Positions 17,766 to 47,362 of a DNA stretch of 50,550 bases are shown in pieces (the first letter of the stretch is position 1; every line of letters begins with the position of its first letter). The stretch covers positions 6,973,188 to 7,023,737 of the forward strand of contig BFEA01000011.1 in NCBI GenBank assembly GCA_003427395.1, read 5' to 3'. The notes beneath the pieces are model-generated. The model did no database searches, had not been told where the DNA came from, and saw only the letters and a list, made by a program, of their open reading frames with translations. The position numbers and the translations under genes were made by a program. This DNA comes from Chara braunii (lineage: Eukaryota > Plantae > Charophyceae).

Positions 17766-17769
<4 letters not shown>

Positions 17770-17838
<69 letters not shown>
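17770..17838. repeat. (GA)n microsatellite adjoining an assembly gap
   Basis: Visible. Similar runs at 43164-43216, 43401-43457, 45530-45601, and (TG)n at 47326-47382. Confidence 0.95.
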
Positions 17839-18889: not shown

Positions 18890-19300
18890 TAATTAGCCCT
18901 AAGTGCAGGGCATGCTACTGCCCACTTGTGATTTATTTTATTTTATTAGATTATTGACCAGCCTGTGATTGGTTGATCATACATGTTGCGGGCAGCGGTG
19001 CCCAGGCCTAAGTGAAGGTCACGTGTTGTTCACCGCTGCCACGCTCAATGAAAGTGATTTACTTTATTTTATTTTATTCTATTTTGTGATCAACTTCTGA
19101 TAGGCTGATCACACCCACGCTGTGGGCAACGGTCCCCATACCCTAAATGAGGGCCATGTGGGAGCAAAGTGCCGTTAATGCAAGAGAGGACATTGAGTTC
19201 ACTTTATTTATTTATTTATTTATTTGACTATGTGATCAGCCATTGTCTGGCTAATCATTTCTCAACTGGCAACAACGCACTTATAATAGGTGAGGACCCC
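18890..19300 (+). repeat. ~130-145-bp tandem repeat (3 units), each with a 9-7-9 palindrome
   Basis: Each unit has a cctaagtg(a/c)agg-like motif, a TTTTA tract, then tgatcagcc-N7-ggctgatca variants at 18955, 19087 and 19233. Confidence 0.8.
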
Positions 19301-19374
19301 GTGCAGTAATTGAATAGGAGTAGTATTCTACATGTCCCTGTGTTCTATTTGAACATGGGTAATGCAGAAGTCCA

Positions 19375-19630
19375 GAATTGCACCCCTGAGTTGTATACGA
19401 ACAGAGGCAACAAATAATTGTACCCCCATGGTACAATCAAGCAAAACGACACTAAAACTATATTGATGTTAGTATTTGAGCAGGGGCAACGTGGAGCTGC
19501 ACCCTGTGCTGCACCTAATGTTTTAATTGAACAAGAGGTGAGCAAGCCGCATCCTTGTGCAGTAAGTAACCAGGGAGCATGCAAGTTGCACCCCTGTGCA
19601 GAATATGAGCTGCCGAAATACTGCCCCACT
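19375..19630. repeat. Cluster of TGCACCCCTG-like subrepeats
   Basis: aattgcacccctg, aattgtaccccca, gctgcaccctgtgc, gttgcacccctgtgc, plus inverted caggggcaac. Resembles DNA-transposon subterminal repeats. Confidence 0.55.
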
Positions 19631-20144
19631 AAGCAATATTTGAACTGCTGGTCTATAGCACACGAAAGATAAGGGATTTTGCAGTGCATCTTTCCGAGTC
19701 TTAGCGGAAGATCCATCCTCATCAAGCCAGAGATAGAGAGGTAGCGCGTGTACATGAGAGGGATGTGCGTTGGTGAGTGCACTCAGCATATATGGGGAAA
19801 CACAATGGATGCACTAGTGCAGATAAGCATAGAAGGGAGTTTGAGTCGATTGGAAATAAGAAGGATACAAATAATAACAATAATAAGAATGAGAATAAAC
19901 ATAAAAAGAGAAAGGAAAAAAATAGAAAAAAAAAAAAGATTGATGGGCGTGATGGATGAGAGATCACGAAGTCAGGGAGGACCAAGTTGGTCAGTCTCAT
20001 GATTCTTTTCACCATGAGATGAAAAAAATTTTGAAACTACCATTGTAAATTTGCAAATTCCATAAATGTCATTGAACTATCGAAATTCTAAATACCCCTC
20101 TATGGCTTTGAAAGTACATCAGCGCTCTGTGCTGCTGCCAATTA

Positions 20145-20580
20145 GCGCGGTGACAACACACTGTGTGGGCACACAATGGCGTGCTAGACTGACATTACTT
20201 AGAACAGTGGCAGTATACTATGTGAAAACGTCCTCGCAAGTTGCTGCAGTGACACTATGCTATGTGAAGTTGTTTACCAGAGGCAGAACACTATGTAGAC
20301 ACATGGCATGAGCACATGACCATCATGCTAAGCTGATCCTGTATGGGTCGGCTACAACATACCACGCGAAGACATTAGGGGCAGGTTGAGTGAAAAACGA
20401 TATTTGAATATAACAGTTGTGTGCTAGACTAATCTTACATGACGCAGTGACAGTACAGTGTGTGAGGACTTTAGCACAGTGGCAGTATCCTGTGTGAGAG
20501 AAGCAGTGGGCTGTGCTTGCAAGCTCAGGAAAGTTGAACAAATTAGTGCTACGCGACAACAACAGTTGCATGTGGGACAC
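20145..20580 (+). repeat. Degenerate ~35-55-bp tandem repeat (GTGRCAGTAYRCTRTGTG)
   Basis: gtgacaacacactgtgtg, gtggcagtatactatgtg, gtgacactatgctatgtg, gtgacagtacagtgtgtg, gtggcagtatcctgtgtg. Confidence 0.7.
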
Positions 20581-20699
20581 TGAGCTATTATCGTTTCAAC
20601 AAACAGTGTTTGACTCTGAGGTTAAGCCTAATGTTTTTTTCCAACTACGATGTGACTCTAGCTCAACATATCCTGTCTAAAAGGTCTGCTGGGCCACTC

Positions 20700-22410
20700 C
20701 CAACAGACTGTACATGTGGAATCAGAGATCTAACCGAGAAGACTTGAACTACACAAGGTAAATAAACTAAAGATATGCGGACGGAACAAACCCCATGCAG
20801 CCCAGTAGACTCTCAAAGAGACCTTGAGCAGATTCAACCAAGAAGGAAAGGAATCAGGGGGAGGACTTCAGTGAATATAGAAAATTATTACTAGAACTCA
20901 GTAAACGGTTAAGGAGAAGGAGACTTTGACGAGCAGGACTGTGTTTCACAGCAAACGGCATGCTTAAAGTTGAGTTTAAAGTAAACGGCAGACTCAGGAT
21001 CGAGACAACAACAGCAACGACCTCTGATATAGGGAACTGTAGTCTCAGCAAGTCGCATGCGAAGACTCATCAGAGCTCGAAAACCAATATCTCATGGACT
21101 CAGACCAGCGACAGGGGAACTCAGACCTTGTGGCTCGGGCCAAGGAGGATTCTCAGTCACAACAGATCCCACACTAAATCTCAGTTGCAAAAATCTCAAC
21201 AAACTTCAGTGACAGAGGACTGTCGTCGCCACATCGTTTCAACCCATGTTGGAATACACTCTGATGTCACAGAGCTAACTCTCACAGAATGGATGTTCCA
21301 CACCTACGGTTCAGTGAATCCGGCTTGTCCCTGTAAGCTCACACAAGTCTCAGTAAACTTGAATCATCGTTAGTGAGTTTAGTCTCTTACCAGCAGTCTC
21401 ATCTCAGCACCAATGGGTCCTGTTCGGTTTCATGAAGTTTGGTTCAGACTTGGTGATAGCATCTCATCTCTTATAGTTCAATTCCGTTTTAGTTTTAGAA
21501 TCTAAGTGTGACTCTCAGAATGGAGTGCAACTTAGTGTAAAACCAGACCTCAGTGTTGTTTTATCAATAATCTCAGTTCAAATGAAGCGCAACTCGGCCT
21601 ACAAGACTCAGTAAAACTCAGTCACGGTTTTAGCCACATAGTTTCAGTGAGTCTGGGATGCAATTCTCATACCAAATTCGGTCAGTCTTGTCAACAATTT
21701 TTTTTTTAAGTTTCAACAAGGTCTTCAATACGAGTCTCAGCAAGTTCTCGGATTGACTTCTGTGAACTCAGTCTAAGCAAGTTAAGTGCGACATTGGTGA
21801 ACTCAGGTCAGTTTCAACATGATCGGTTCAGTTTTTGTAAATTTAATCTGAATCAATGAACTTTGATCAGTTGCAGTGAATTCACTGCAAATTTAGACAT
21901 CTCATATCAATTTCAGCAAGTGTAGTTCAGAGACAGTGAAGGCGGTCTAGTTTCGGCGAGTCCAGTCTCAATTTTCAGTGCAAGCTCAATTCAGTTCTCT
22001 TCAGATCTGAGTGCGATTTGCAGAGTATACTCAATTCAATCCCTAGATCAGACCCAAGTACTGTTTTTTAAGTAAGTTTCAGTTCAATCCCCAGTGCAGT
22101 ATCAGCGGGTTCATCTCAGTTTCATTGAGCTCGGTCTGATGGACTTAATCTCTACAAGTTCAATTCAGTTTCAGTAAGGTCAGTGAAAACAGTTTTATCT
22201 CTCTAGTCCAATTCAGTTTTCAGTAAGTTCACTTCAGACTCAGCGAATTCAACTTCACCTCAGCGATTTCACTCCAGCTTTGATTTCATTCAGTTCTCAG
22301 TTCAGTCTCAGTGACCCTGATCTCAGTGAGTTCAATTTTCAGTTTCAGTGAGTCCAGACTCAGTGGACTCAATCAATGGTCTCAGCTTACTCTCAGTCGG
22401 TTCCGTTATC
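20700..22410 (+). repeat. YTCAG-rich cryptic simple-sequence tract
   Basis: Very high density of ctcag/ttcag/ttcaa pentamers on the + strand, increasing towards 22400. Confidence 0.8.
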
Positions 22411-25849: not shown

Positions 25850-26380
25850 AAAACGCCCTCAGTTGGGTCACCTCTGCGATTGCAAGTGAGCAGCTTTCGC
25901 TTGTGGTTCGGTAGCTCGGCTGGGATACATCTGTCCAAAGTAGGTGACAGCCCTTTGGGCAGAGGTAAGGTGTACCTCTCCTGCCCACAGGCGGTTAACG
26001 AGTAGCTGAAAATTCAGGAATAAAAATTCTAAAGTGATAATTTTTGGCAGTCTGAAAATCTCGAATGAGCCTGAAGTGGTGAAAGGTTCGAAGACCTTGA
26101 AAACCACTTGTTTAGGCAGGCTGCATCCTGAAGTGGTGAAGGGAGAGTTTTGGGCAGTCTGAAAATCATGAATGGTCCTAAAGTGGTGAAAGGTCCGAAG
26201 ACCCTGAAAACCACATGTTTAGGCATGCTGCATCATTAAGTGGTGAAGGGTGTCCTGAAGTGGTGAAAGGTTCGAAGACCCTGAAAACCACCTGTTTAGA
26301 TGAAAGCCCTATGCGAAAAAGTCATGCACACTGCGTGACGTGGTCGGGAGGGTTCCCCTGCGGGGTCGATGCGGTCGACA
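25850..26380 (+). repeat. A-box module interrupted by element S
   Basis: 5' part at 25850-25980 (aaacgccctc...agaggtaagg). The 3' end resumes at 26333-26380 (gcgtgacgtggtcgggagg...gtcgatgcggtcgaca; compare 39074-39138). Confidence 0.8.
25985..26305 (+). repeat. Element S, copy 1: array of 57-bp and ~50-bp subunits built on CCTGAAGTGGTGAA
   Basis: Begins ccacaggcggttaacgagtagctgaaaattc. Repeated cctgaagtggtgaaaggt(t/c)cgaagacc(c/t)tgaaaaccac. Confidence 0.9.
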
Positions 26381-26624
26381 ACGTAGCGGAGGCCGAAAGG
26401 TGCGGAATAGGTTTGGACGGAGTCGGACGTACGGTTTTTGACTCGGTTGACGTATTTCCGCAAGGGAAAAAATCAAGAGCGGACCTCGACTCGGTAAAAA
26501 AATCCTCCGCAAACTTATCTCTTACTAACCTCGACATTGATACAAGTCTTCGAGGTTAGTTTTAGTCAGGTTCAACAACTCGGACGGTATGACCTTCATT
26601 CCATGTATGGGTTCAAGGACGACG

Positions 26625-29600
26625 AGTTATGGTCGTGCTATCAAGCGCATCGACTCCCGCCTGTTTCGCAAAAGACGAGAGTCCTCCCGACCATGTTACG
26701 TATGAGTAAAAGCAAAGCAAGAGACAACTAGAAGACGACACATAAATAATCCCGCTAACCTTCGAGACGGCACGGTCGTATCGTCCCTTAGCCGGTTTAG
26801 CCGGGTGCGTTAGCCGTACTTCCCTCGGTCCCCTACAACAGAATAGGTTCCCGCGGGGCACAGCTTGCCTTCCCTAAGGAGCTCCCATCACCCTTAAGGG
26901 TGTATCCCTACCGAGCTACTGACCCTGCAAAAGTTTTTAGATGCAATCGCAGAGATGAGTCAGCCAAGCGGGTTTGCTCGTTCGCCATAGTATAGGTGTG
27001 CTTAATTAGAACGTCATATGAAACTAAATGTCGTCCGCTTCCTAGGGTGCTAATCTCCTAGGTAGAGAGTGTACATCTGTCGATTACTAGGACGCCTCAA
27101 CGAAGCGTGAAAACCACAGGTAACCCTAGTCCCTTTGCATATAACTTAGAAAAAATATTATTGCCATATTCGAACCTAACTCCATTAGACCGGATCGACC
27201 GTACCCGATAAAGCACCATCCGTAGTAAAAGATAAATTGCACCACAATTGGGTAGTTGCAGATCCATTTCGATGAGAGAATCGAAAGGATAAATATAAAT
27301 CTTCAAATATCACAAGATAAAACACAAATCAAAATGATGTCGGATAAACCCCACAGACTCACACACGACAAATCGAGTCAAAACGAGGTTTAACATTTTA
27401 AAACAATTGACAAGGTAGTCGAACTATCTTCGTTTTGACTTGATGAGCCAAACCCATTCATTCCCTCCTACCGTCGACCTAAGATTAACATCCACTCATG
27501 TCACCATGTATGAACAGTCTTCTAGGATGACAAACTATTTAGCGGATGATTCTTGATCAGGTGGGTTACTCGAAGTGCTACATATCCGACAAAGATCTTC
27601 TTATTGAGCCACTTTTCTCGGTACTGAAGGTTCGCAAATATTTTTGCCTTTGTGCAAGGGGAATTGTTGTTTGATCGATCCACCTCTGGTCCTTTTTTCT
27701 TGTGATGCAAAGCTCATCCACACAGGTGACGCTTACGTGCGTCCACTTCAGACTAATGTCCCACTAGACTGGGCCTCTCGTGGCACTAGGTTTTTAACCT
27801 CCGTAACTCATAAGACGACCATTGGAAAGGTTGTTAAAGCTTCACTCTGCACTAGATTTTAAGAAGATTAAAACCTCCCCTCAGTAGACACACACCCAAC
27901 CTTGTAGGAAGTGGTCTAGGGCACTCCTCCTCCTTGCCGGAGCACAAGACTCGAGTCTCATAAGTTGGGTCGTCTCCACCGAATCGGCGAAGTACGCCCC
28001 GTAAGAATGGTCCACTCTAGGTCAATAACAGGGCCGACGCCTAAAGCAACGAACTCCTACCCAAATGCTTCCTAGAGAGAGGGAATATATCTACCGCAAG
28101 TAGACTTCAAATATTTTCTTCCTCCCTTGCCCAATGTAACTTAAACGAAAGGAAATAGAGGAAGTAGAGGATGATAATCGTTTGGACAGGTATAGGTAGA
28201 TACGGTTATTCAGGATAGAACAGGTAAACCTTAGGAGAAAGTTATATTCATGTTAACTTTCTTAACTTATTACTGTTATGTTCGTTTTCTCGAAAACTTG
28301 TAATGCAACTCACATTAAGTTTATTTGTTCACAGTAAACATACAAGCAGAAAAATCAAATGAAAACTACAATTATTAAAATACCGAGTCAAAGCAGACAA
28401 TTTTCCTTTTTTATTCCATCAGTTTTCCCTTACATGCGCATTGCGTTCAACCAACAACAAAAAAAATCCACAATCCACATCGAGGTCAAACTTTTTCATT
28501 CACATAGGGAAACACGTTTCCTTTGCCTTTTATAGAACATTCACTGAACAGGGTCAAGCAAGTGTGGGTTCACACGGGTGTGAAGGGAGTCGGAGTCAAA
28601 AACTAACCTTGAGTAAAATACAGACTGACTCACTCAAAAAAGTCAGATATCCCAATCAAGTAAAAGTCAGATATCCCAATCGAGTAAAAGTCAGATATCC
28701 TAACCAACTCGTCTGACCACAAAGACGATCCATCATTCTCCCTCAGCAACCAAACCTCAGTGAAGCGAACTCAAATGGGATAACCCTCGAGGAGGGCAGT
28801 CCCATAGTAAGCCCCACGTGGTCCCAATTGCACCACTAAGATCTAAAGGTTATTTCAGGTTCACCACCAATCCCAAACAGCTCGTCAAAAATATTAAGAT
28901 CTTGATCAAAACCACCCTTGAAAACCATAAAACTCGGGCCCAGGGATAATCTTGGTCCATTGGACGCTCGACACCACCTCCTCCAGACCACCTCGGCTCA
29001 CTCAAACGGTCGTCGCTGCACTTGTACCATCCCCGAAAAAATAAACAACACCTCTACCGTATGTCGTGTCGTAGCCCACCACCGCGTCGCACCGCTTAAA
29101 GCAATCATCTTGCCGTCAAACAGACAACATCTCTCCTTAAAATAGTGTTGTCGTCGTGCCGAAAATCTGGTAGCACCTTCCCTCATAAAGGCCTTGATGT
29201 CGCGGCAGCAATCAAGCAACACTCGGTATCAAAACTTCGTCGTTGACGCGCCGACAATCTGGCAACATAACCCCCACCGCAAATAATGGTCACTGTCGCA
29301 CCAAAATTCCGGCAGCATGACCCTCTTTAATCGGTTGTTGTACTGGCAAAAAAAATCAGCAACATCTCCCCCCGATGTTGCGGGCGCGGACTATGGCTAT
29401 GACTGCTTGCTATAGTTATAGCCACCCAACTCCACCTTCAACCTTCGTGCAAACCTCCATCTCTATCAGCCACTCCAATTCCAGGATAGTACTAAGGCAG
29501 AGCCTCTCTAGCCTTAGCTATCGTTGGTCTGTTCCCCCTTCAACGATTCCCGTTTCAACCTTGCAGACCACTAGCAGTTCCACCAGTAGCTTGTCCCTCA

Positions 29601-30780
29601 ACACTGCAGACCTCCAACGCTCCTTTCCACCGTCTCATCAGTACCTCAAACTCCTTGAGGCCAAGTACCCCACCTCAAGGGTTACCGTATAACCATAGCC
29701 TTGTGCTATGTCAAGCCACCGCTTCAGTGTGCCTTGCTTGAGTTCAGCCCCTTCTAATATAGCCATGGACTTGGGTACCCTCACGTCATTTGAGTTATGG
29801 GTTCATGCATCCAGTTTCAGCTACTAAGTCCCGAATTCACTGCTCGGATTTCACTTATCATCTTCTCTTTCACCCTCTGTTGAAATCACGGAGCAAATGT
29901 TGTCACCTCATGTTGTGACCATAACTTCTATACCCCGATTTTGTCTGCCTCGTTCGGCATATATACACATTCCTCTGCAGCCCATGCATCCCATGATGAG
30001 GGTCCCGAAATGTCACATTTGCCTCTGAAATCAAGGTTCTAGAGCAGCCTCTCATTCAAAAATGGAGGCCGGCTCACTCCCCATGGGTTTGGGCCCAAGC
30101 AACCCCTCACAGGGCTTCAATACAAGACGGATAAGCCAAACCCTCTACTATCTTGAGAGCTGCCGATTTAGAGGCTTCATTCCCTTGAAGCCTCAGTTTG
30201 CTATTGGAGGCAACTAGCACAGCCAGACCTTAAAAAGGTTTGAGTTGCACTACCTCACTGTGGTTATGGGTTGAAAAATTCGCATCCGTGACCTTCTCCA
30301 CTCGTTGCTTTTGACAAATCTCTCCCACATTAAAAATGAGTAACCAAATAGCTGCAGCTAAGTTTTGGACAGCCATTGGCTGCCTTTTTTCTGTTTGGTG
30401 CCCGTTCTGAGGAGTGTCAGCTCAGTGCCAAGGTTGAGGGGGAAGAATAACTCGTGATAATCACGACTTCAAATCCCGACAGTCCCAAAGCGGGGTGCAA
30501 AAAGTACACCGACTTTGGCGATTTTTAAATAAAAATTTGTTAAATAAAAAAATATGAAAACAATCATGTGTGTGGCGAAGCTGCTCACCTGCTCAGATAA
30601 AACTTTTCAGAGATGAAAACAATCAGTTATGCCACCAAACAAATATCGGCGCAAATTGCCAAATACTAGTTTTCACAAAATTTTGATCCCGTTTTCCGTT
30701 TTTTTTTTTCCTTTTTTTTTTTTATTCTTCGCCCCCTGAAAACGGGGAGAGAGTTGGCAGGTCGGAAGGAGTAGGTTTTC
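26625..30780 (-). mobile_element. Repeat family E, near-complete copy (~4.1 kb), A-box at 26625-27130
   Basis: The reverse complement aligns block by block with 35413-39145 (acctactcct.ccgacctgcca; gtactttttgcac; ~57-bp subrepeats; gttcgttgctttagg; cacctgatcaagaatcatccg; A-box). Confidence 0.88.
28637..28705 (+). repeat. 24-bp tandem repeat x3
   Basis: aaaagtcagatatcccaatc(a/g)agt repeated. Confidence 0.92.
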
Positions 30781-30802
30781 GATGACCACATGCCTTTGCG
30801 GT

Positions 30803-31168
30803 CCACAAGCGGTTAACGGGTAGCTGAAAATTCTCGAATTAAAATTCTGAAGTGAGAGTTTTTGGCAGTCTGAAAATCCCGAAGGGTCCTGCGGCGGTGA
30901 AAAGGTCTGAAGACCCTGAAAAACACCTGTTTAGACAGGCTGCATCATGAACTGGTGAAGTGAGAGTTTTTGGCAGTCTCAAAATCATGAATGGTCCTGA
31001 AGTGGTGAAAGGTCCGAAGACCCTGAAAACCACCTGTTTAGGCAGGCTGCATCCTGAAGTGGTGAAGGGTGTACTGGAGTGGTGAAAGGTCCGAAGACCC
31101 TGAAAACCACCTGTTTAGGCAGGTTGCATCCTGAAATGGTGAAGAGTGTCTTGAAGTGGTGATGAAAA
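30803..31168 (+). repeat. Element S, copy 2
   Basis: Same start (ccacaagcggttaacgggtagctgaaaattc) and same subunits as 25985-26305. Confidence 0.9.
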
Positions 31169-31378
31169 ATACGACTGTTGTTAACCTTCTTTTTTTAGGC
31201 CTCGCCAAACGCGGGGCCAGTCGGTCACACCTTAGCCTCTCCCGCAGGCTGTAGGCGTCATAACATTAGACCAAACACCTTAACCTATGGGTTGTTGGTC
31301 AGGTCTTAATAAACTTTGGCAAAGCCTCATTGTCATCAAGTCAAATCATTTAAACAAAAACCCATCAACAGTCGGACC

Positions 31379-32296
31379 ATGCCTGATATTAAAAATCTCG
31401 AGCAGATACTTTTGGAAGGGTTTTTGCTCCAACAACGCTTTGACCTTGAGATTTTATGGATTTACCTTAAGCTTGTCCTGCACTGCGACGCTCGAATGAG
31501 ACCATTTGAAAACATAGAGTTCTTCAAACGGATCCATGCCAATTGTTCCGAGCAGATGGAGAATCAGGTGTGTGGGAGAGCAGTATACTGAGATAAAGTT
31601 CGGAACCTTCGACGACTTATCGGTGCTTGATGTGATTCATTTTCTATGGACAGATGGTCGATGGTCGATGAGATTTTACTCAGGCAAGATATTTGTTATT
31701 GCATGACACTATGGACGAGGAGTTGATCCAACGAGTGGGGCGACTTCCATTAGTTCATGATGATGCGTCAACTCGATCCACTGGATTTATTGGTTTGCTC
31801 AGAGATGGACAATGATTTTTTTCGAACTCTCACGATGACGTTTATGCCAATGTGGCGCGGATCCAACGAGTGGAGCGACTTTTATTGGTTCATGACGACT
31901 CGTCAACTCGACGCACTGGATTTATTGGTTTGCTCCGAGATGGACAATGATTTTTTTTCGAACTCTCGTGCTGACGTTTATGCCAATGTGGTGCGGCTTC
32001 TTGATGAACTTCATGAATATACTATGTTTTTCCATCGCGCAAGTAACCTCCAATGTCTTTTTCATGTCATTGTGAGTGTCAAGATTACCTTATCCGGTGA
32101 CCGCTACGACATTATGCGGATTAGAAACTCCACGAAGAGGCACCTTTTTAGGATGCGTCAGCCTTTTCGTACCATAGTATGGAGGTTGGTCTCTCGAATG
32201 ACCTCCCTCTATGGCTCACAGATGGTTCAAGTTGTGCGAGAGACCCATATTTCTACTTCAAATTTTAATAACGAGGAACTCGCACGACTCGACTAG
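31379..32296 (+). pseudogene. ~305-codon single-frame ORF with four nonsense codons, derived from compressed rDNA (copy 3)
   Basis: ATG 31379 to TAG 32296 in one frame, with an in-frame 135-bp tandem duplication (31725/31860). Anchors: actgcgacgctcgaatg (18S 5'), gatggagaatcagg (18S), ccatcg-cgcaagt and catgtcattgtgagtgtca (5.8S), caagattacc and attatgcggattagaaact (LSU start), gaggtt..agatggt (LSU). Confidence 0.65.
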
Positions 32297-32669
32297 ATCG
32301 AGGCCGAGGCTCGAGAGGGTCAGAAGTTGTACTATGGCTAGACATATTCTTGCGGACTTCGTTTTCTCACGAGGCTGCTTAGGGGACCACGTTAGATTGT
32401 TCCTATATCCGAGTTGTTGTTATTGTGTTTAACTCGACTTGGTAATCTAAAAAAAAGTTAAAACAATTGTTAGATAGGACCAACCGGATGGATAGTATCC
32501 GACTTTCGTCGATGATGGTATTGTCATGCTCAAGCATTGAGGTGTAATCGAGCACGTGATGAAAGGATCACGAGCAGAAGTTTATAAATATAAATTCATT
32601 GTCACGCCTGTGGCAAAACATTGTAATAGCACAGTAAAAATTATATGACATAAGGATTCTTTACAAGAC

Positions 32670-33600
32670 GTGCAACACTTCACGAATTGCATTTGGTCAA
32701 GAATCATCCGCAAAGCAACATATCATCCAATAAGATTAGAAACGTATGGGGACGGGTATGCGCGTGTCTAATCTTAGGCCGGTCGTAGGATGGAATGAAT
32801 AACTTAGGCAGCGCATCTCATCGAGTCAAAATAGGGGAAGTTTAACTACCTTGTCGGATGCGTAGAGGTTATTGTCAAAACAAATTTTTCGTTGGTGGTT
32901 CAATATGATTTTTTTTTTATCGAGTTCAATCCGGGGTGGTTTGGTTTTTATTTCGATCTTGCATTATTAGTTCTACTATATGGTGCTTAATTTTTTTCAG
33001 TTATCGTTTTAACTTATTTTGAATTGTATATACATGTTTATCGATTACGATCAATTCGTTTTGATATAATTGTATGCGGTCATTATTACGTTTTTTTTGC
33101 TAGTGTTTAGGAATAGGGTTGAGCTACGGGTTTTACGCTTGGTTAAAACCGTTCTAATTGACCGACATTTGTTTCGTACCTAGGAGATAAGCGTCCTAGG
33201 GAACGGATGACGTATGAGTTCAAATGACGTTTTAACCGAGCGTACCTATACTGCAGCGAACGACTAAACGCCCTCGACATACCTACCTCTTCGATTGCAT
33301 ATAAAAGTTTTCCCATGTGGACCAGTAGCTCGGTAGGGATACGCCCCTAAGTATAGTGACAACCCCTTAGGGAGGGTAAGTTTTGCCCCGCGGGACTCTA
33401 TCCTGTTGTAGGGGACCACGGGAAGCACGACTGGCGCACTCGGCTAGAGCGGCGAAGTGACATTGCAACCCCGCCCATTTCGGCGGTCCGCGAAATTATT
33501 CAAGCATCGTCCCGAGATGTCTGTTGTTTTGTTTTTCTTTAACTCCTACTTGATATGACTAGGAGGAATCTTGCCTTTTTCGAAAAAGGAGGGAGTTGAT
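32670..33600 (+). mobile_element. 3' part of repeat family E including A-box (33100-33600)
   Basis: caagaatcatccgcaaagca, ctaatcttagg, ggaatgaataactt and cagcgcatctcatc are shared with 38270-38395. cagtagctcggtagggatacgcccctaag matches 38862 onward with one mismatch. Confidence 0.9.
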
Positions 33601-34259
33601 TCATTCGACAGCGGAACATAACAACGAACACCACTTGAATGCACTGTAGTATCTGTCTGTCGCTGTTCAACACAAAAACAATAATTGCACGAAGTATAGC
33701 AGCAACAACCGTAATCTTGAGTAAAACTGACAGTAATAACCTAAAACAATGGTCTGAGAGCGTATAAGTCAAAACCCCAATAACAGGCTTAAGAATAACA
33801 ATAGTGCTGCTTGACGAAAATCATCAGTCGAATCTAAGAAAACCAACACCTCAAATATGGTATTTGCTACTATCGAGGGAAATAACTTTTTGCCCATGTT
33901 GCCCATTGCTACAGCAATAAACTGCGTTTTCGTAAAAATTGAGTTTTTTTTTCGTTTTGCAATTCGTACTCGAGAGACCTCAAGAGGTCATTTGACATGT
34001 TCGATGAGGGCCATATTTTGGGATGAGTGGTAGTCTCATGGATGATTACTCATCCCAAAAAATGACCCTTACCGGACAGGACAAACGACTTTTTTATGAC
34101 ACTTAAGTACAAATTGCGAAATAGAAAAAAACTTGATTTTAACAAAAATGCAGTTAATAACAATCTAAAGGTTGCAGCAGCATCGACAGTCTCTTCCATA
34201 AAGCACGAGGGCACACCCAAAAGAAAACACAATGACAATACTTGAGATCGCAACAATAA

Positions 34260-34570: not shown

Positions 34571-35154
34571 CAGCCAGAGGGTCGTGTCTTTTCTAAAAGG
34601 GCGGACATCAGGGTTCCGAAGGCAAACCCACGATGAAAAGGGTGGATTGTCGGGCCTACCAGACCTAGCCAGCCGGCTCGATGGCGGGGCGGCCTACCTT
34701 TGGAGGGGATAGGCAGACTGCATCAGCCTACCCCAGAAAGTAGGCGGCCTACTGGGCCTCAACCCTTCAAATAGAATAGTGGCAGGCATAACTTTTGTGA
34801 TAGGAGCTAGCCCAGTAAGTATCGCATTCAACTTTCACCCAACAGATGATGGGATCGAGCCCGACGATGTCTTGTCTGGGTTTGCTCCTTTTTGGAGCTG
34901 CCCACCATATAGCCTTGAAGCGCGGTCATTTTTTATCGCGAGATCGTCAGATCTCACAACCGAAACGGCCGCGCGACTGCAAGCACAGCCCCTACTCAAC
35001 GATGACACGCATAAATCAAGAAATAGTCCAAAATTTGTTTTTCGATCCCCATGGCGATCGAACTTGGATCCGCGCCTTGAAAGGAACAGGGGGAGAAACG
35101 CCAGCGAGACGTGGTATTGACACAGTGGCCGTTGGCTTAGCTTATGCCAACGAC

Positions 35155-35518: not shown

Positions 35519-38500
35519 GAGAAAACAGGAACAAATTTTATAAAAATCGGTATTTTTTTTAATTGCGCTAATATTTTTTTGGTGGCGTAAACCAATTTTG
35601 TCAGCCTTGAATTTTTTTTCTGTAGGTAGCTAGACACCTAGGTCATACGAGTGAATGTTTTCATATTTTGTTATTGGGCGAATGTTTTTTTTTAAATCAT
35701 CAAAGACGGGGTACTTTTTGCACTCCGGGCTGAGTCTGTTGGGATTTAAACTCATGAATTTTCACGAGTTGTTTCCCTACCTCTCCCAACCTGACAACTA
35801 CCTTTCCCGTTTTCAGGAGAGGGCAAAAGAAATGCAAGGAGAGGACAACAACAGCCACAACCACGAACGTGGCCGCGACCGTGCTTCAAGTACAGACTAA
35901 TCAGACCAAACCTGTAACTTGAAGGGACGAGGGGGAAAGTGGTTGTACACAACCACTTTTGTGACGTACCTGCACTTGATAACGTGTTGGGTACAGGAAA
36001 AAAAAGGAAAGAGGCAGTTGAGGGTAACTGTCTCCCTAAGTGTGTGGATGAGGTGCGAGAACCTTACACCCTTGATCGTGTTGAGATCAAGGGCCCCAGG
36101 CAAGTGACGAATTTTACCTGGCGGCAATTGAGGCTGCTGCTGCCCTTCTCAGCCACTATAAAAGAGGCAGTTGTCCTCCAGCTGCCTCACAATTGCCTCC
36201 AGCAACCAGTGTGCGACATCACACTTGCCTCATTGCTGGTGTGCTGGAGAGGAGGCAAGAGTGTTGCAGACGGAGCTGGAGGACGGCAATGGAGTGAGGC
36301 GAGGAGGAGGAGACAACCATAGCTTGGCTGGAGCACTCCGCTTCATCCAATGGCTGGCTAGTCTAGGGGGATTTACAGCAGCGCAGCGAGGAGCGGTCGT
36401 GAGATGCGACAGGGGGCGACGACGACGCTGCGGCGCTGGGAAGGTGTTGTGGCACGGCGTCATGGGGAGGTGTTGCACGAGCGGTGCGGCGTTGATGGCA
36501 GCCATTTTTCTTACGTGTTAGGGAGGTACTGTCCGGGTGACGTGGCGTCGACGGCGGCTATTGCGGTAGTGCAGGGAAGTATTGCCGGACTTGTGGCACG
36601 GCGACACTTGATTTTTTTTTTTGGCAGGGAAGTGCTGTCGGATTTGCGGCACGGCGGCACTTGATTTTTCTTTTGGCAGGGAAGTGCTACCGGATTTGCG
36701 GCGCGGCGGCACTTGATTTGTTTTTGGCAGGGAAGTGCTGCCGGACTTGTGGCGCGACGACAATTTATTTTTCTTTTGGCGCGGAAGTGTTGGCGGATTG
36801 GTGGTGCGACAACAATTGTTTTTTTTTCTTTGGTGTGGAAATGCTATTGGACTAGCGACATAGCAACAGGGATTTGTCGCATGGCAGCGACGGAGTTTTT
36901 TTTCTACGGCGCGGTGTCTGTTTTGTTTGATGAGGTTGTGCTACCAGAGTTGGAGTGTGAAGCGGCGGCGGCAACGTGACGTGGTGGCAGTTGGCGCGTG
37001 CGACACTATGAAATCTGCGTCAGGACCGAATGTTGGGGGTTGGGACTGCCTCGGCTCTTGTGGCAGTGGTACCGGACCATTTGGGACTGCCTAGGACCAG
37101 TTGGGACTGGCGCGTGGCGTATGCGGTCACAGCGACAGTCTCAAGACTGGTTGGGTTTAGTAGGACTCGGGTATTTTTTTAGGAGTGAGGCGTGAAGTTA
37201 TTGTGGTTAAAGGTCTTTTGACAAGGTGGTTGGTGGCGTAGGACCATCTGGGACCACTTGGGACCAGTTGGGACAAACGTGGGAGCAGTTGGGACTGTCT
37301 TGGAACCAACATTTTTTTGGGGACTCGTGCGACTTGCCGCCATCGAAACTGGGACTACCACGTGTGAGACTTGCGAGTCGGGAACAGATTGGGACAAGCA
37401 GTTGGCTTGAGACTTGCCGTCGGACTGCAGTTTTCTTTGACGACAAATATATTATTTCTTGGCCTTCTTGAGTGAGCCAGGGCGCGTTCGGCACCACTTC
37501 ACTCAAGGGCAGTCAGTTGATTGACTCAAATTCCTTTTCACACATGTGTGAGCCCACATTTTGCTTGACTCTGTTTGTTTTGCATGTTCAAAGGAAAAGG
37601 TTGAGTAAAACGTATGCGGTCATGAATGTGAAAAGTGGGATATGACGGGAGTATGGGTTGCTGGATTTTTTGGACCTGTTGGTTGTTTTTGTGCGTGCAG
37701 GCAGGCAGAAGGATGCTTGCCAAGGAGAATGGTTAATGCCTTATCGAGATGAGAAAAAAAATTGTTCTCTTTATACCTTTCGTCTACCTACTTATTTAAA
37801 GGACTTGTTCAAGTTGTTCTGGAAAATAAGAATCTAGTGCATGTTGTAAAATGAATCCGATTGAAATAAAGCAGATAAGGTCAAATAAAATTAGTTTTTT
37901 CCTGAGGATTACTCGTTTTATCCTGAATGATCTTACCTACATGTACCTGTCAAATGATTCTCATTCTTTATCTCCTCTGTTTTGTTTTCATCCAAGTTAC
38001 CATGAACTTAGGAGAGATAAGAATAATTGAAAGCTACTTGCAACGGATACATCCCCTCTCTTAAGGAAGCATCAGGGGTTAGTGTTCGTTGCTTTAGGAG
38101 CTGACCCTGTTTATCGATCCATAGTGGACCATTCTACAGGGGTGTACTTTGCCGATTCGATGAAAACGGTCCGACTTTTGAGATCCGAGTTTTGTGTTCG
38201 GCCGAGGAGGAGTACCCCAGACCACTTCCTAGAGCGAGAGACATGTAACACTTCAAGCAATGCACCTGATCAAGAATCATCCGCAAAGCAGTCTGTCATC
38301 CAAAAAGATTGGGAAGGTGTGGAGATGGGTTTATCCGTACCTAATCTTAGGTCGGCGTTAGGTGGAATGAATAACTTTGTCAGCGCATCTCATCAAGTAA
38401 AAAATAAGGTTTTCCGACTACCGTGTCTGCTGCATTTATGTTATTGTCGAAAGTCAATTCCTCCTTGGCGATTGTATGATTTTTGTGGAGTTTGACCCAC

Positions 38501-39145
38501 GGTGGTCGAGTTCTATTTTGACCTTGTGTATTTAATGATGATTTTGATTATTTCGATTATCATTACAGATGGGATATACATTCATATCGACTAAGTACGG
38601 TTCCTTTTGGTATAACTATGAATGATTGTTATAACTTTCTTTTGACTAGTGTTTAAAGAGGTAAGGAGGTTTCACGCTTGGTTGAGACCATCCTTGTCGA
38701 TCGGCGTATGCTTCGTACTTAGGATATCAACACCCTAAGGAACGAACGATGTTCGGGTTCAATAGGCATTTTAATCGTGCGTACCTATATTACAGTGAGC
38801 GAGGAAACGCCATCGGCTGACCCACCTATGCAACTGCATGTACAAGCTTTCGCACGTGGGTCAGTAGCTCTGTAGGGATACGCCCCTAAGGGTGGTGACA
38901 ACCCCTTAGGGAAGCAAGTTTATGCCCCGCGGAAACCTATCCTGTCGTAGTTGGCGCACACGGCTAAAGCGGCGAGGGGACGACGCGACCACGGCCGTCT
39001 CGGCGGTCCACGAAATTATTTATGCACCGTCCCCGAGTTGTCTCTTTGTTAAGTTTGTTTTGTTTAAACTCCTGCGTGACATGGCCGGGAGGACTCCCAC
39101 CTCTTTGCGAGAAAAAACGGATGTCGATGCGCTCGACACCGCCAT
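35413..39145 (+). mobile_element. Repeat family E, near-complete copy (~3.7 kb); possibly a long LTR or promoter-leader of a large retroelement
   Basis: Homologous to 26625-30780 (-). Contains TATA-like ctataaaag (about 36156), a ~57-bp tandem array and an A-box at 38650-39145. No TG...CA termini, PBS or TSD identified. Confidence 0.85.
36570..36860 (+). repeat. ~57-bp tandem repeat inside E
   Basis: ttttggcagggaagtgct(g/a)(t/c)cgga(t/c)ttg(c/t)ggc(a/g)cg(g/a)cg(g/a)cacttgattt, about 5 units. Confidence 0.9.
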
Positions 39146-40069: not shown

Positions 40070-40845
40070 CAGGGTTCACCATCTTTCGGGTCCCAACAGA
40101 CATGCACACACTTAAACCTCTCATATCAAATCGTGGTTCGCGGATAATGTACCCACGTAAGCACCTTGATAATCCTCCTTTCTCTCACGATTTTCTCAAT
40201 AAGCCCTCTCTTCTTTACTTTTCATTCTGCCTGTCTGAGGTCAATACTGCTCGCATCATCTCATTGACCGACATCTATAATTCCAATAACAATTTCCCTC
40301 CTCCTGACTTCTTCATCGTTTCCGTCTACCTTCGTTTTTTTTTTTATTCCTCTCTCTCATATCTTATGTTTTAGTCTTTTAATAACAAAACTAACACTAA
40401 ACTTTCGGTCATCGCCTTGAAACACCCAATTACCTCTTGCCCTTACTGTTATGAAATAGACAGACACAACTTGATTTCATTCGTTACTACTCACGTCTTC
40501 GTCGTCCTCCTTGTCGAAGTATTATGCTTCTTCTTCGATCCAGTGGTGCAACTTATCGAGGCGTTGCAATCCGGTTTCTCTCAACTCTCGACAATGAATA
40601 TGATTGAAATGAAACGAGTGACAACCCCATACCCGTTATCGGGCTACTAGTTCAACTATACAAAATATTCCCCTTCTAAACGTATCGAACCTACTCCCCC
40701 GCCTACGTTCATTCGATAACTGCAAGGAATAATATTGAGCATCACTTACGAAAGTCTTATTTGCCCCATTCCAGTTTTAACAGTCGTTCTCAAAGACCGA
40801 TCTGCAGACAATAGCTTTAAGATATCATCATCAGACCGACTGATC
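40070..40845 (-). pseudogene. Compressed rDNA-derived segment (18S-5.8S-25S/28S snippets in order), copy 2
   Basis: On the - strand: actgttaaaactggaatgg (40784-40766) and ggcgggggagtaggttcgat (40703-40684), 18S-like; aacgatgaagaa (40320-40309) and gaattatagatgtcggtcaat, 5.8S-like; ttgacctcagacaggcag (40244-40227), LSU start; exact LSU motif gggacccgaaagatggtgaac (40094-40074). Confidence 0.75.
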
Positions 40846-40974: not shown

Positions 40975-41470
40975 GGTGTCGAACGCCTCGACTCCCATAT
41001 TTTTTCGCAAAAAACGAGAGCCCTCATGACCGCGTCACGTAGGAGTTAAAAAAAATATGAGGACAATTTGGGGAAAAAAAATATGAGGACAATTTGGGGA
41101 CAACACATATGTAATTCCACAACCGTCGAGATGAACGAGGTTGTGTTGTCGTCTCGCCGCTCCAGCCGGGTGCGCCAACCGTAGCTCTCACGGCCCCTTA
41201 TGACAACATATTTTTCCGTGAGGCACAACTTACCTTCCCTAAGGGGCTGTCACCACCCTTATGTGGGTATCCCTACCGAACTATTTCCCCATGTATGAAA
41301 GCTTTTACATGTAGTCGCAAAGGTAAATCAACTGATCATGTTTGCTCGCTCGCTGAAATATAGGCACGTATGGTTATAACGTCATCATGAACCCGAACAA
41401 CGTTCGTCCCTTAGGGCGCTGATCTCCTAAGTATGAGCTCGTGTTGGTCGATTAGGACAGTTTCGAACCC
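40975..41470 (-). repeat. A-box module
   Basis: The reverse complement contains gggatacccacataagggtggtgacagccccttagggaaggtaagttgtg and ends ...gagtcgaggcgttcgacacc, like 39123-39140. Confidence 0.9.
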
Positions 41471-41508
41471 ACTTCTTACCCTTCCCCCAAAAGTTTGATG
41501 TTTTTTTT

Positions 41509-41799
41509 GGGAAAAGTTATAAAAAGTTACAAAGCCTCCTCGCTCCGAAACTTGTGTATTCATTTCCCTCCAAGTGGGGCAAAAAATGCCTCAAGTCCCA
41601 AAATTGGTGTCATTTTTGCGCCCTGTAAAATACTTTCCCGCCATTTCTGTCAGCGTCCGTGCCGGGCCAGCCAGGGTGCAAAAATGACACAAAAAGAATC
41701 ATTTTGGGGCCTGTGGCACTTTTTGCCCCGATTGGTGGGGGAACCAATACGGAGGTTTCGTCACGGGAAGGTTTTACAACTTTTTCGTTTTTTTTTCCC
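41509..41799. mobile_element. Fold-back (MULE-like) MITE with ~120-bp imperfect TIRs
   Basis: gggaaaa...ggggcaaaaa.tgcc.ca...gtgtcatttt(t)gc.ccctg mirrored by cagggtgcaaaatgacac...tttttgcccc...ttttccc. TSD not found. Confidence 0.7.
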
Positions 41800-42201
41800 T
41801 CCCTTCCTTTGTACACCTTGCTTGGCCGTTCGTCCACTCATCAGACCTTAGGCAAAGTTTTTGGAAAAGTGCCCGGAACGTCAGGCCTGTTGGGTGGGAT
41901 TTTTTTTCACGAACCTATCGGCGCGGAGGCGACTTTCAAGCGACTTCTCCGATTTTTTGTTGAAAGTGCCGTGTCGGAACAGACCCATTTTCACCGAAAT
42001 ACCTGGTTTCGTAATATTCACCGAAATACCTGCTAGGTGAGCCCCGCGTATGTCCGAAGCACGGTGCTCCAACACGCGGCCAGCCCTTCGGTAACTTGCT
42101 GCCGATTCTCTCAGGCTGCAGGAAGGCGCAGCTCGGCTCAGGTATGTAAGGTACTTGGTTCAGGCCGAGGAGACGTCCGAGCTTCGAACCCAGCACCTAA
42201 T

Positions 42202-42323
42202 GGGCCTCGCTGCACTACTCTTGAAATGCACAAAAGACAAAAATCATGGCGGTGTATCTGTCCATATTCTAGCGGAAGATTCGCTCTCGTTTTGCACATT
42301 TCAAGAGTAGTGCGGCGAGGCCC
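42202..42323. mobile_element. 122-bp PIF/Harbinger (Tourist)-like MITE
   Basis: 27-bp TIR gggcctcgctgcactactcttgaaatg / catttcaagagtagtgcggcgaggccc (one mismatch) and 3-bp TSD AAT on both sides. Confidence 0.85.
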
Positions 42324-43163
42324 AATGTGCGCAACTGAGGCATGCTACCGCGTGAGCTCTCCCTGGGGACCTACCGCGGACATCGTAACGCTCCCTTGCC
42401 GAGCCTGTCGTCGTCTTCAAACTCGACAGGGACTTGTCTCCGACCGGCGCCCTAACGTCCTATCGCCTGACACCCTCTCACCTGAACCCCTCCCCTCTCT
42501 CGTCCCTCTCTTCCTCCCCGGCCGCCACCCTCCCCCCTCTGTCTCTCCCTCTCTCTTTTTCTGTCTGTGTCCCCAATGTGTGGGTTGTACCGGTAGCGTG
42601 CTCCGGCACGGTCCTTCGAAGCGTCCAGGTGGTGGTCCATCTGGATCGAGATGTCCGACGATGACGATGATGATGACGATGAGCAGGAGATGATGACGCT
42701 GACGGTGAGAATCTGAGCTCGCTTTCTCACTTTCTCGTGCTCTCGCTCGTCGGACGCATAATACCCGGGGGACAACAAAGAATATGAAAACGAGGAGAGG
42801 AGTNNNNNNNNNNNNNNNNNNNNNNNNNNNNNNNNNNNNNNNNNNNNNNNNNNNNNNNNNNNNNNNNNNNNNNNNNNNNNNNNNNNNNNNNNNNNNNNNN
42901 NNNNNNNNNNNNNNNNNNNNNNNNNNNNNNNNNNNNNNNNNNNNNNNNNNNNNNNNNNNNNNNNNNNNNNNNNNNNNNNNNNNNNNNNNNNNNNNNNNNN
43001 NNNNNNNNNNNNNNNNNNNNNNNNNNNNNNNNNNNNNNNNNNNNNNNNNNNNNNNNNNNNNNNNNNNNNNNNNNNNNNNNNNNNNNNNNNNNNNNNNNNN
43101 NNNNNNNNNNNNNNNNNNNNNNNNNNNNNNNNNNNNNNNNNNNNNNNNNNNNNNNNNNNNNNN

Positions 43164-43220
<57 letters not shown>

Positions 43221-43397
43221 TACGTGGTGAAAATGAAATGGAAGAGAGCATGTCGAGGACCCATGTATGTGGATCTGTGGCCATGGGAGTGCGTGCGATA
43301 CGAGGTGCAGGGAGGGATGGAAGGAAAGAGGGAGGCCGTGGACGCCGCGTTGATATTGACGAATGCGATGGCGTGGGCAGGGAGGGAGGAAAGTTGA

Positions 43398-43466
<69 letters not shown>

Positions 43467-44221
43467 TTCTCCCAACAAATCTCCCCTGTTGGTTTGCAGT
43501 TTTTCCTTTCTTTTTTTCCCTCCTGTCCGTATCGTGAACTGTCTTTCGGGGGCAGAGAGAGCGAGAAGAGAGGTGGGTGATGGAGTGAATATGCTGCCAG
43601 GATAAATGGGCTGAGGAGCATGTTCAGGAAGGGAAGGCGGCATATGGGAACAAGTGTGCTCAGAGGTGAAGTTTTAATGCATCGTTCTTTCTTAGCGCTG
43701 CTCTGCTTTTTTTTCACTGTACTCGGAGCAGGGGGAGGAGATGGGGGAGGAAAGGAGCAGGGAGAGAGGAGAGGAAGAGGGAGTATGACGACTTTGTCTC
43801 CTCCCCGGTCGCTCTCCTTTCTCTGCTGATACCACATGCGAAGATCCTGTTTTCCTTGTCCGAAGACATTCGTGCGGAGAATCGCCGCCGGCCTCTTTAT
43901 ATTGGAGATATACCTCTCTCCCCCCAAAAATAAGGGCCCCAAAATGAAATCCGACCGTAATTCTAATTCACACCCAACGGATTTTGGACAAGCCCTCCCC
44001 CAAGCATACGACACGTCACCTCTGTGGCAAGGTCCCTTTTTGATTCTTCCGTTTGTTTCTGGCCGTTCATTGCCAAGATCAAGGGTCAGGGAAAGCAAAT
44101 CGACCGGGACCTGGCCACTGGCCAAGCTCTTATTTATATGCACCTACTTATGCCTTCTGTTCTTCTGTTTTTTTTTTTTTTTTCTTTTTCCTGTTTTGTT
44201 GTGCGCGCCAACCCGCAACAG

Positions 44222-44324
44222 GTCATCATCATCTAGTAACAAGGAGGGGATGCTCTCTAAAGCGATTGCCAATCTGAAGTCGGCTTATTAAAGCTCTGTT
44301 TTCGTTGGACAACAACGCCCGAAG
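44222..44324 (+). promoter_or_regulatory. Probable 5'UTR part of the FAM91A1 start exon, with a uORF (44250-44291)
   Basis: A long polypyrimidine tract (44154-44200) ending ...caacag| gives a 3' splice site at 44221. The uORF encodes MLSKAIANLKSAY*. Confidence 0.55.
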
Positions 44325-44452
44325 ATGGATCGCGCCGCTGCTTCCAACGAGGAAGGGATGGTGGCCAAAGCGATTGAGGAGGAGATGATGTGGGAGTTCC
44401 TCCCCAAAAGGCTGAAGCTGTATCTGAGCTCTAGCGAGGAGTGGAGCAAGAG
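44325..44452 (+). CDS. FAM91A1: FAM91A1 family protein, first coding exon
   Basis: MDRAAASNEEGMVAKAIEEEMMWEFLPKRLKLYLSSSEEWSK(R) resembles the plant FAM91A1 N-terminus (…EEQLI.KAI.EEC.WENLPKRLQ..L.SKEEWHRR) and ends at an AG|GTAGGG donor. The next exon was not found in the window. Confidence 0.88.
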
Positions 44453-45100
44453 GTAGGGGGGCAAGTTCCTTGCCTGGCCCTGTTGCATGCTGGCTTGGGA
44501 TGCTCTTGACTCCCGTAAAGATTCTCTCCTGTCTTCCGCCCGCCGATTTTCTTTGTTGCCCCCTATCCTCCTGCTTCATGTGTTGTCCCATATTCGTCCG
44601 TCTTCCATTTCTGTCCCCAATCCTAACGCTATTCTCATTGACCAATTGCAATCCTGTTGCCATCCTATTTTCTATTCTTAACCCCCGCTCCATGTTCTGT
44701 TGTTGTATATTCATCCCTGTCCCATTTCCCCGTCGCATTCCTACCATCCCCTGTCCCATCCTGAATCCCTTTCTTCATCTATCGATCGTCCATCTCCATT
44801 CTTAACCCTATTCTCATTAGGCAATGCCAATCCTATGGCTATTCCAATTGCTTGAGTCCTGTCCAACCTCTTGCATTGCCTCCCCCAACAAATCTCATTG
44901 CATTCCCATTCTCTGCTCCATTGTCATTTTGCTTTGATTAGTGGTAGTCCGTTTTTGCCTGTTGCCTCAGCGGTTCAGCTCCCATTTTGGATTCCACAAT
45001 CATCTTTTTCTCCGTCCTGAAGTCCGAATGAGCTCATCGTTTTCCCACGTCGAGGTCCCGCGCAGCCTTCATTGCGAATATCGCACTCTTCCAACAGAAC

Positions 45101-45372
45101 CTTCCACGATCTTCCCACACTGTTGTCCCACACAATCTTCCTGCACGAAATCCGCACAATTTTCCGCAAGATCTTCCTTGATGAACTCGCTCAGCCGATT
45201 GCAATGCTATGTATCGTCCGGCAATCTTCCACGATCTTCCCACACAGTTGTCCCACACAGTTGTCCCACACAGTTGTCCCACTATCTTCCCGCACGAAAT
45301 CTGCACAATTTTTCACAAGATCTTCCTTGATGAACTCGCTCAGCCGATTGCAATGCTATGTATCGTCCGGCA
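45101..45372 (+). repeat. Tandem duplication (~123/149 bp) with an internal 13-bp unit (cccacacagttgt) expanded to 3 copies
   Basis: caagatcttccttgatgaactcgctcagccgattgcaatgctatgtatcgtccggca occurs twice. Confidence 0.92.
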
Positions 45373-45525
45373 GCGTTAAGACATACAGCGGTGTCCCCAT
45401 GGGGAGGTGCATGCCTGCCTGCCTGCCTGCAGGTCATGCCAAGGCTCCGTTCCGAAGAGGCTCGTAACCTCTTGATGGAGCCAGAGCGCGCTAATAGACA
45501 GAGCCATCAACACACACGCTCACGC

Positions 45526-45601
<76 letters not shown>

Positions 45602-47323: not shown

Positions 47324-47362
<39 letters not shown>

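Follow-up and report, generated by a model that had tools for sequence, protein, structure and literature searches.

A silent single-copy locus of Chara braunii is very probably the relic of a two-exon gene carried in a giant retrotransposon LTR

Introduction

Ogre-type elements of legumes are Ty3/gypsy retrotransposons with very long LTRs and extra ORFs. In retroviruses, proteins can be encoded within the LTR itself: the sag gene of MMTV lies in the 3' LTR, and nef of HIV-1 overlaps U3. Here, we analyse a locus in the charophyte Chara braunii that resembles these systems in part, and that lies in a stretch of 50,550 nucleotides of contig BFEA01000011.1 (the window, to which all unprefixed positions refer).

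An earlier note, made from the letters of the window, had interpreted 31379-32296 as the third copy of a compressed rDNA cassette that had turned into a protein gene and recently died. That interpretation is partly supported, in that the locus is the remnant of a dead protein gene. However, our findings make it very probable that this is a decayed, silent, single-copy remnant of an LTR-borne two-exon gene, situated in an old and diverged giant LTR. The features of the locus and its surroundings are collected in Table 1.

Table 1. Features of the relic and its surroundings (positions in the window)
Feature	Position	Strand	Evidence or remark
High-copy tandem repeat, 77/107-nt units	30760-31190	.	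TRF rows 30848-31162; not part of the relic
Exon 1 remnant	31379-31567	+	Frame open from 31316; hmmsearch E 0.005-0.012
Candidate intron, 86 nt GT-AG	31568-31653	+	CAG/GTGTGT ... TATGGACAG/ATG; homology changes frame here
Internal stops of the 305-codon frame	TGA 31589, TGA 31628, TGA 31724, TAG 31751	+	Sequence
Exon 2 head	31654-31951 (298 bases)	+	Other forward frame (blast frame +1); homologous to P0003 135-203
Tandem duplication	Copy 1 31725-31859 (135 nt), copy 2 31860-31995 (136 nt)	+	Period 135, 89-90% identical
T-run, one extra T in copy 2 (8 vs 7)	31950-31957	+	Alignment of the two copies
Exon 2 tail	31952-32296	+	Ends TAG 32294-96; P0003 189-303, P0002 93-200; profile 213-311, E 5e-10
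Short 5.8S/LSU-like motifs	32032-32044, 32063-32081, 32080-32089, 32111-32129		Sequence
Spacer from gene to LTR end	32297-33245	+	First 370 bases single-copy; from about 32666 resembles 38239-39020
LTR 3'-terminal module ('A-box')	33246-33610	+	Ends ...TTCGACA at 33610; 74-78% identical to L002-L005 LTR ends
'A-box' LTR ends	33246-33610 (+), 38790-39100 (+), 26640-27010 (-), 41000-41350 (-)
Further 'A-box' LTR ends	4887-5081 (-), 5160-5363 (+), 25850-25928 (+)

Results

Homology to a C. braunii protein family

The translation of 31754-32293 was compared with 1.84 billion proteins using phmmer, which returned five matches at E≤0.001. Two of these were hypothetical proteins of C. braunii, P0002 (CBR_g39797, GBG85231.1; E 6.7e-7) and P0003 (CBR_g70324, GBG93443.1; E 1.7e-6), each matched in a single stretch of about 100 residues at 31-32% identity. 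The other three matches were to repetitive proteins, in multiple stretches, and were taken as spurious. P0003 has three more annotated relatives, all of them from C. braunii, giving a five-member family that consists of CBR_g70324, CBR_g39797, CBR_g10793 (P0006), CBR_g70733 and CBR_g3695 (P0008). None of the protein searches found a relative outside Chara, and Pfam recognized no domain in P0002 or P0003.

When the family was searched against the locus with tblastn, E values of 1e-15 and 2e-10 were obtained. Residues 135-203 of P0003 aligned with 31654-31860 in frame +1, reading through two TGA codons (E 2e-10, 38% identity over 69 aa). Residues 158-192 aligned in the same frame with 31858-31962, which is the second copy of a tandem duplication described below, and residues 189-316 aligned with 31952-32332 in frame +2, the frame of the ATG at 31379. 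A profile of the five members was then scored against all 2474 stop-to-stop pieces in the six frames of the whole window. The four best matches of the 2474 pieces all lay within 31313-32293 on the plus strand and were collinear (profile positions 124-161, 171-213, 182-213 and 213-311, with E values of 0.012, 0.032, 1.2 and 5e-10, respectively). Together, they span 31427-32239, and no other piece of the window scored at an E value below 1. The matches of exon 1 and of the two pieces of the exon 2 head are individually weak, and owe their weight to their collinearity with the family profile.

At the DNA level, blastn of the relic against the five loci that carry the family (L001-L005) revealed no similarity except at the LTR terminus. 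Across 194 aligned codons, nucleotide identity between the window and L001 was 51/69/36% at codon positions 1/2/3, values that overstate positions 1 and 2, since the alignment was guided by protein similarity. The relic was probably once a protein-coding gene.

Exons, probable intron and reading frames of the relic

The long frame that drew attention to the locus is present in the sequence: the stretch from ATG 31379 to TAG 32294-32296 forms a frame of 305 codons with four internal stops. However, the locus does not use a single frame throughout, as had been supposed. The exon 2 head is homologous to the family in another frame, and the homologous frame is that of ATG 31379 only in 31379-31567 and 31952-32296.

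Within exon 1, 31427-31540 corresponds to profile positions 124-161, and ATG 31379 is internal to the family protein rather than its start. Exon 1 shows 31% amino-acid identity to the exon-1 read-through of L001, in a register with which BLASTP agrees. A pairing of LKLVLHCDARMRP with P0003 residues ~95-107 was dropped, as both BLASTP and the profile give another register.

The change of frame after exon 1 falls at a candidate 86-nt intron. In the gene models of P0003 and P0006 (L001 and L003), the splice acceptor falls a single nucleotide ahead of the ATG that opens this same motif, M-[VA]-G-A-R. We read the 86-nt GT-AG segment as the intron of the family because the frame change and the family acceptor fall at the same place. 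This identification is probable on the sequence, and an indel would account for the frame change equally well. The candidate intron shifts the frame by -1 and holds two of the stops, TGA 31589 and TGA 31628, while TGA 31724 and TAG 31751 are out of the homologous frame in the exon 2 head. The four 'premature stops' are therefore placed in a probable intron or out of frame, because the middle of the locus uses another frame.

The stops that do interrupt the homologous frame are TGA codons at 31669-71, 31813-15 and 31948-50. These three codons count as two events, with one lesion occurring once in each duplicate (TGA 31813-15 and TGA 31948-50). Copy 2 also carries a +1 frameshift, its extra T, by which the tail returns to the frame of ATG 31379; copy 1, which has 7 T, aligns with P0003 up to residue 203 without any gap. 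The shifts of the candidate intron and of the extra T cancel (-1 and +1), so that exon 1 and the tail end up in one genomic frame, and the 'no net frameshift' that had been taken as a sign of coding arises because 86 + 1 = 87, a multiple of three. The long frame is thus a by-product, whose out-of-frame middle happens to contain just two stops.

The N-terminal profile positions 1-123 (~120 codons) are absent from the relic. Given the absent N-terminus, the three in-frame TGA codons and the frameshift, we classify the locus as a pseudogene and not as a working member of the family. With two independent stop events and one frameshift in about 290 homologous codons, the view that a protein gene died here and has not decayed heavily is supported.

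Open reading frame statistics

As an ORF statistic, the 305-codon frame with its four stops is not beyond chance. Windows of 306 codons with ≤4 stops make up 3.9% of all such windows in the 50.5 kb analysed. In 200 Markov-1 sequences of 50.5 kb each, simulated with the local dinucleotide make-up, regions with ≤4 stops per 306 codons occurred at a mean of 1.3 per sequence, and at least one was seen in 62% of sequences. An open frame of ≥180 codons was found in 25% of the simulated sequences, and one of ≥135 codons (the open-frame length when the duplication is collapsed) in 98.5%. The 179-aa ORF gave no match in a word-index protein search and no record in an exact-sequence look-up in public gene calls, Pfam found nothing in any of the ORF pieces of the locus, and a feature-based search of the ESM Atlas with the ORF gave no usable match (recognition score 1368). 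AlphaFold2, run on the five-sequence family alignment, produced no confident fold (pLDDT 31.5). A plasmid DNA search with the locus returned no match, as expected for a eukaryote.

These findings bear on the explanation that the frame is a chance opening in junk DNA, that its protein matches are spurious and that it was never a gene. The length and stop count of the frame lie within chance, and the lack of a Pfam or word-search match, the low language-model recognition score and the lack of a confident fold speak for it as well. However, a chance frame would not be expected to reach E values of 1e-6 to 1e-7 against 1.84 billion proteins with matches in the same species, to supply the top four of 2474 pieces as collinear profile matches, to switch frame at the intron position of the family or to show the 51/69/36% codon-position pattern. 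We consider this explanation barely plausible, and retain that of a pseudogene.

The tandem duplication and the order of the lesions

A frame-preserving duplication of 135 bp had been described in the middle of the locus. The duplication is real and has a period of 135, but copy 2 is 136 nt in length and the frame shifts within it. Between the two copies there are 14 substitutions and a single 1-nt indel, and the duplication (31725-31995) was not among the repeats reported by TRF. Because the T-run of copy 2 has 8 T rather than 7, the last ~36 nt (~12 codons) of the two copies fall in different frames, and are translated differently in the 305-codon frame.

It had also been pointed out that the second copy has TGG and GGA where the first has TAG and TGA. 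The letters are as described, and TAG 31751-53 of copy 1 does correspond to TGG 31886-88 of copy 2 by a single A/G substitution. In contrast, the pairing of TGA 31724-26 with GGA 31859-61 is a junction effect and not a substitution, because the T at 31724 lies outside the repeated unit. From these pairs, the stops had been judged to be secondary and the cassette to have been coding after its compression. Neither conclusion is supported: the TGA at 31813-15, which is in the true frame, has its counterpart at 31948-50 in copy 2, and the differences between the duplicates are spread evenly over codon positions. The 10 substitutions before the indel are distributed 3/3/4 by codon position in either frame, and this even spread indicates that the duplicates have drifted neutrally since the duplication.

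As the TGA is common to both duplicates, it predates the duplication on parsimony, and the gene was probably already broken when the 135-bp piece was duplicated, as far as can be judged from the sequence. The most likely order of events is one in which a sense codon would first have become TGA (31813), after which slippage or unequal exchange would have produced the tandem duplication of the 135-bp piece of exon 2. The T-run of copy 2 would then have gained one T, with the copies drifting about 10% apart.

Ribosomal RNA-like motifs

The origin proposed earlier was a compressed rDNA cassette, with 5.8S joined to the start of LSU and no ITS2, that became a protein gene, multiplied and recently died. 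The proposal drew on short 5.8S/LSU-like strings at 32032-32129, and the window does contain one real LSU scrap, at 11825-12107. The short motifs are indeed present, yet they are not significant in Rfam. At the gathering score, Rfam reported no match of any kind in the window. No 5.8S/LSU match was found in the locus when the whole window was searched at E≤1, in the surrounding 3 kb (30500-33500) at E≤10, or in the 221 bases of 31960-32180 searched alone at E≤10 with the most permissive filters. Searches of 31300-32400 against the rest of the window using blastn and tblastx matched the internal duplication alone, so that neither DNA nor translated similarity connects the locus with the LSU scrap or with 'copy 2'. 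A weak snoR66 C/D-box candidate at 32007-32077 of the minus strand scored 22.4 bits, where the gathering score is 43; it was absent from the whole-window search at E≤1 and was attributed to chance.

By profile and tblastn homology, the supposed 5.8S/LSU motifs sit in the best-conserved coding part of the relic. ccatcgcgcaagt, for example, encodes HRAS of the family motif FHR[VA]SN. The bases of the motifs are accounted for by the Chara protein family, and no rRNA-like sequence was found when the intact-relative locus was searched for it.

The LSU rRNA fragment at 11825-12107 (+) matches RF02543 positions 675-954 at E 1e-8, with a score of 49.1 bits that falls below the gathering score of 50, and 40074-40156 is an 83-nt inverted match to 11906-11988 of this fragment. 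These are copies 1 and 2 of the earlier note, and they are unrelated to 31379-32296. The one real LSU scrap thus represents model positions 675-954 and not the start of LSU, to which 5.8S was said to be joined. Since the locus has neither an Rfam signal nor similarity to the two, 'copy 3' does not derive from rDNA and is not a copy of the others either; as far as these searches go, we regard the rDNA cassette as next to impossible.

Copy number and expression

At 31240-32680, the DNA word depth is about 12, the same as in the unique flanks, which makes the locus single-copy (at the k-mer level, in DNA contigs of the probable source sample) and is at odds with its having been counted as one of a family of cassettes. 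Three oligo-dT RNA-seq runs labelled as the same species, of which 6-13% of each was read (~4.2 billion letters), gave 0 RNA reads on 31240-32679. Judged from those samples, this is a silent, single-copy locus, and it does nothing today.

The silence of the locus has to be set against the reading of 31379-32296 as a live lineage-specific gene, in which exon 1 (31379-31567) would be spliced to 31754-32296 via a 186-nt GT-AG intron. Such an intron would remove all four stops and leave a clean 243-codon frame in the register of ATG 31379; 31568 opens with GTGTGT, 31745-31753 is TTCCATTAG, and 186 is a multiple of 3. However, frame-keeping GT/AG pairs are common by chance, about 65 codons of the resulting gene would be out of frame relative to the homologous protein, the differences between the duplicates show no codon bias, and the three poly(A) libraries yielded no RNA read. 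The 186-nt intron (31568-31753) was dropped, with 31654-31951 homologous in another frame and no RNA, and we consider a live gene highly improbable. A pseudogene interrupted by the 86-nt candidate intron remains our preferred interpretation.

The LTR home of the gene in intact relatives

Loci L001-L005 share a long repeated block, and all six family copies seen at the 5 loci are inside it. Intact members lie, for example, at 5854-7150 of L001 and at 9851-11168 of L003. The organization is clearest in L005 (BFEA01000108.1), where 4.4-kb direct repeats at 3836-8228 and 17094-21494 are 90.5% identical, start with TGTCGG and end with CCGACA. A TGG... primer-binding-like site follows the 5' LTR, and the region between the LTRs encodes an aspartyl protease/DUF4100, RVT_1 (5.8e-12), Integrase_H2C2 (2e-11) and rve. 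The segment 3836-21494 of L005 is apparently a complete Ty3/gypsy-type element with giant LTRs, and the family ORF lies inside both of them.

Two of the annotated gene models extend beyond the LTR. CBR_g3695 (P0008, L005) is an annotation chimera, because its model joins the gag/protease region to the ORF of the 3' LTR. CBR_g10793 (P0006, named PEX14 in UniRef), at 10001-23117 of L003 (BFEA01000154.1), combines the LTR ORF (residues 1-346) with Pex14_N exons 12 kb downstream, and is probably a mis-joined gene model.

Within the family, dN/dS values (Nei-Gojobori) lay between 0.21 and 0.33 in exon 1, and between 0.37 and 0.82 in exon 2. We put forward as a tentative suggestion, on which we would not insist, that the CBR_g70324-like gene is a genuine spliced accessory gene borne by the LTR, long under purifying selection (exon 1 dN/dS 0.2-0.3), of which a lineage ~30-38% identical to it left the relic.

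The window piece as a probable LTR remnant

The repeats called 'A-box' in the earlier note can be aligned to the final ~400 nt of the giant LTR, up to its ...GACA(G) terminus, and are LTR ends rather than independent boxes. The LTR-terminus repeat of the window is 72-82% identical to C. braunii contigs. One of these termini lies downstream of the relic, in the same orientation and order as in L005, and the distance from the end of the ORF to the end of the LTR is 1.3 kb in the window compared with 1.4-1.5 kb in L005. The intervening spacer gave no match beyond its likeness, from about 32666, to 38239-39020.

No LTR 5'-end motif and no partner LTR were found in the window, and tblastn and tblastx detected no pol remnant in it. 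As the 5' end, the partner LTR and pol are all missing, the window piece is at best a truncated or solo LTR. The region 31.2-33.6 kb would be what is left of the 3' portion of a giant LTR, old and diverged, from a Ty3/gypsy-type retrotransposon, and the locus is very probably a dead copy of the small two-exon gene that the giant LTRs of Chara carry. We hold the LTR-remnant part of this interpretation with less confidence than the pseudogene part, because the terminal module occurs about 8 times in the window and its position downstream of the relic could be a coincidence (~1 in 10).

The same observations allow a second explanation, in which the family belongs to the host, the LTRs captured one of its members and the locus in the window would be a decayed paralogue of host origin. 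The presence of an intron, which is unusual for retrotransposed sequence, would fit a host gene, as would the lack of a partner LTR or pol remnant in the window. The gene is also far more diverged from its family than the LTR terminus is (about 52% nucleotide identity against 74-78%). However, every family copy seen at the 5 loci resides in the repeated LTR block; order, orientation and distance from gene to terminus are preserved in the window, and the family has no relatives outside Chara. We consider a host paralogue unlikely, and a remnant of the LTR-borne gene remains the reading that we favour.

Neighbouring sequence in the window

Upstream of the relic, the place of the N-terminal third of the gene is occupied by a tandem repeat (30760-31190) with a DNA word depth of 4e4-3.6e5, compared with about 12 in the relic. 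The repeat stops sharply at 31190, where loose ends pile up and reads continue into many different sequences. A second copy of this repeat lies at 25985-26299, and the repeat is weakly represented in poly(A) RNA. Just downstream of that copy, 26410-26484 (+) resembles P0003 residues 52-76 (48% over 25 aa, E 0.19; profile E 1.5), and may be either a second, more decayed relic or a chance match.

Three other features of the window were recorded. A U6 snRNA-like fragment (34981-35037, +; 28.9 bits, gathering score 44, E 0.003) lies 1.4 kb past the LTR end. At 41497-41811, each strand gave a MIR821-like match (59 and 56 bits; gathering score 249). The segment has the look of a long hairpin or an inverted repeat, for instance a MITE, and not of a microRNA gene. 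Finally, 42000-48500 contains long overlapping frames on both strands (up to 418 codons) in low-complexity sequence rich in GA/GT microsatellites; Pfam found nothing in these frames, and they are therefore most likely artefacts of composition.

Discussion

Our analysis removes a false lead, in that a supposed 'mini-rDNA turned protein gene' becomes ordinary retrotransposon debris. It also illustrates how trivially a near-open frame with 'no net frameshift' can arise, when an intron and a 1-base insertion cancel each other. For the annotation of C. braunii, it follows from the family that five gene models represent an ORF carried in giant LTRs, some of them chimeric with host genes such as PEX14. 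The parent ORF is LTR-borne, and apparently spliced and under selection. An LTR-borne ORF with signs of purifying selection matters both for genome annotation and for the biology of giant retrotransposons, and a selected protein gene inside an LTR of the plant lineage would, if true, be unusual.

The closest relatives of the locus are the members of the CBR_g70324 family, with which it can be aligned collinearly across about 190 residues (27-38% amino-acid identity). It also shares with them a probable exon boundary at the same motif and a place about 1.3-1.5 kb before the same LTR terminus. Unlike them, the window copy lacks the N-terminal ~120 residues, contains a 45-codon duplication and is disrupted by three in-frame TGA codons and a frameshift. 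The relic is also much more distant: it has about 52% nucleotide identity to the family, while the proteins of the annotated members are 75-88% identical among themselves. The rRNA scrap at 11825-12107 belongs to the same genome and has similar repeat-rich surroundings, but the locus itself has no detectable rRNA-derived sequence.

Among described systems, MMTV sag and HIV-1 nef share with the Chara gene a coding frame within the LTR. The likeness is one of analogy only, as there is no sequence or structural relation, and the Chara gene is part of a plant-lineage retrotransposon and not of a retrovirus. The Ogre-type Ty3/gypsy elements of legumes provide another comparison. Like them, the L005 element has long LTRs, an extra ORF and a layout of LTR, gag-like/protease-RT-integrase region and LTR. 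Compared with both, the window holds an LTR fragment alone, without an internal region. In Chara, however, the extra gene is located inside the LTR instead of between the LTR and gag, and it appears to be spliced.
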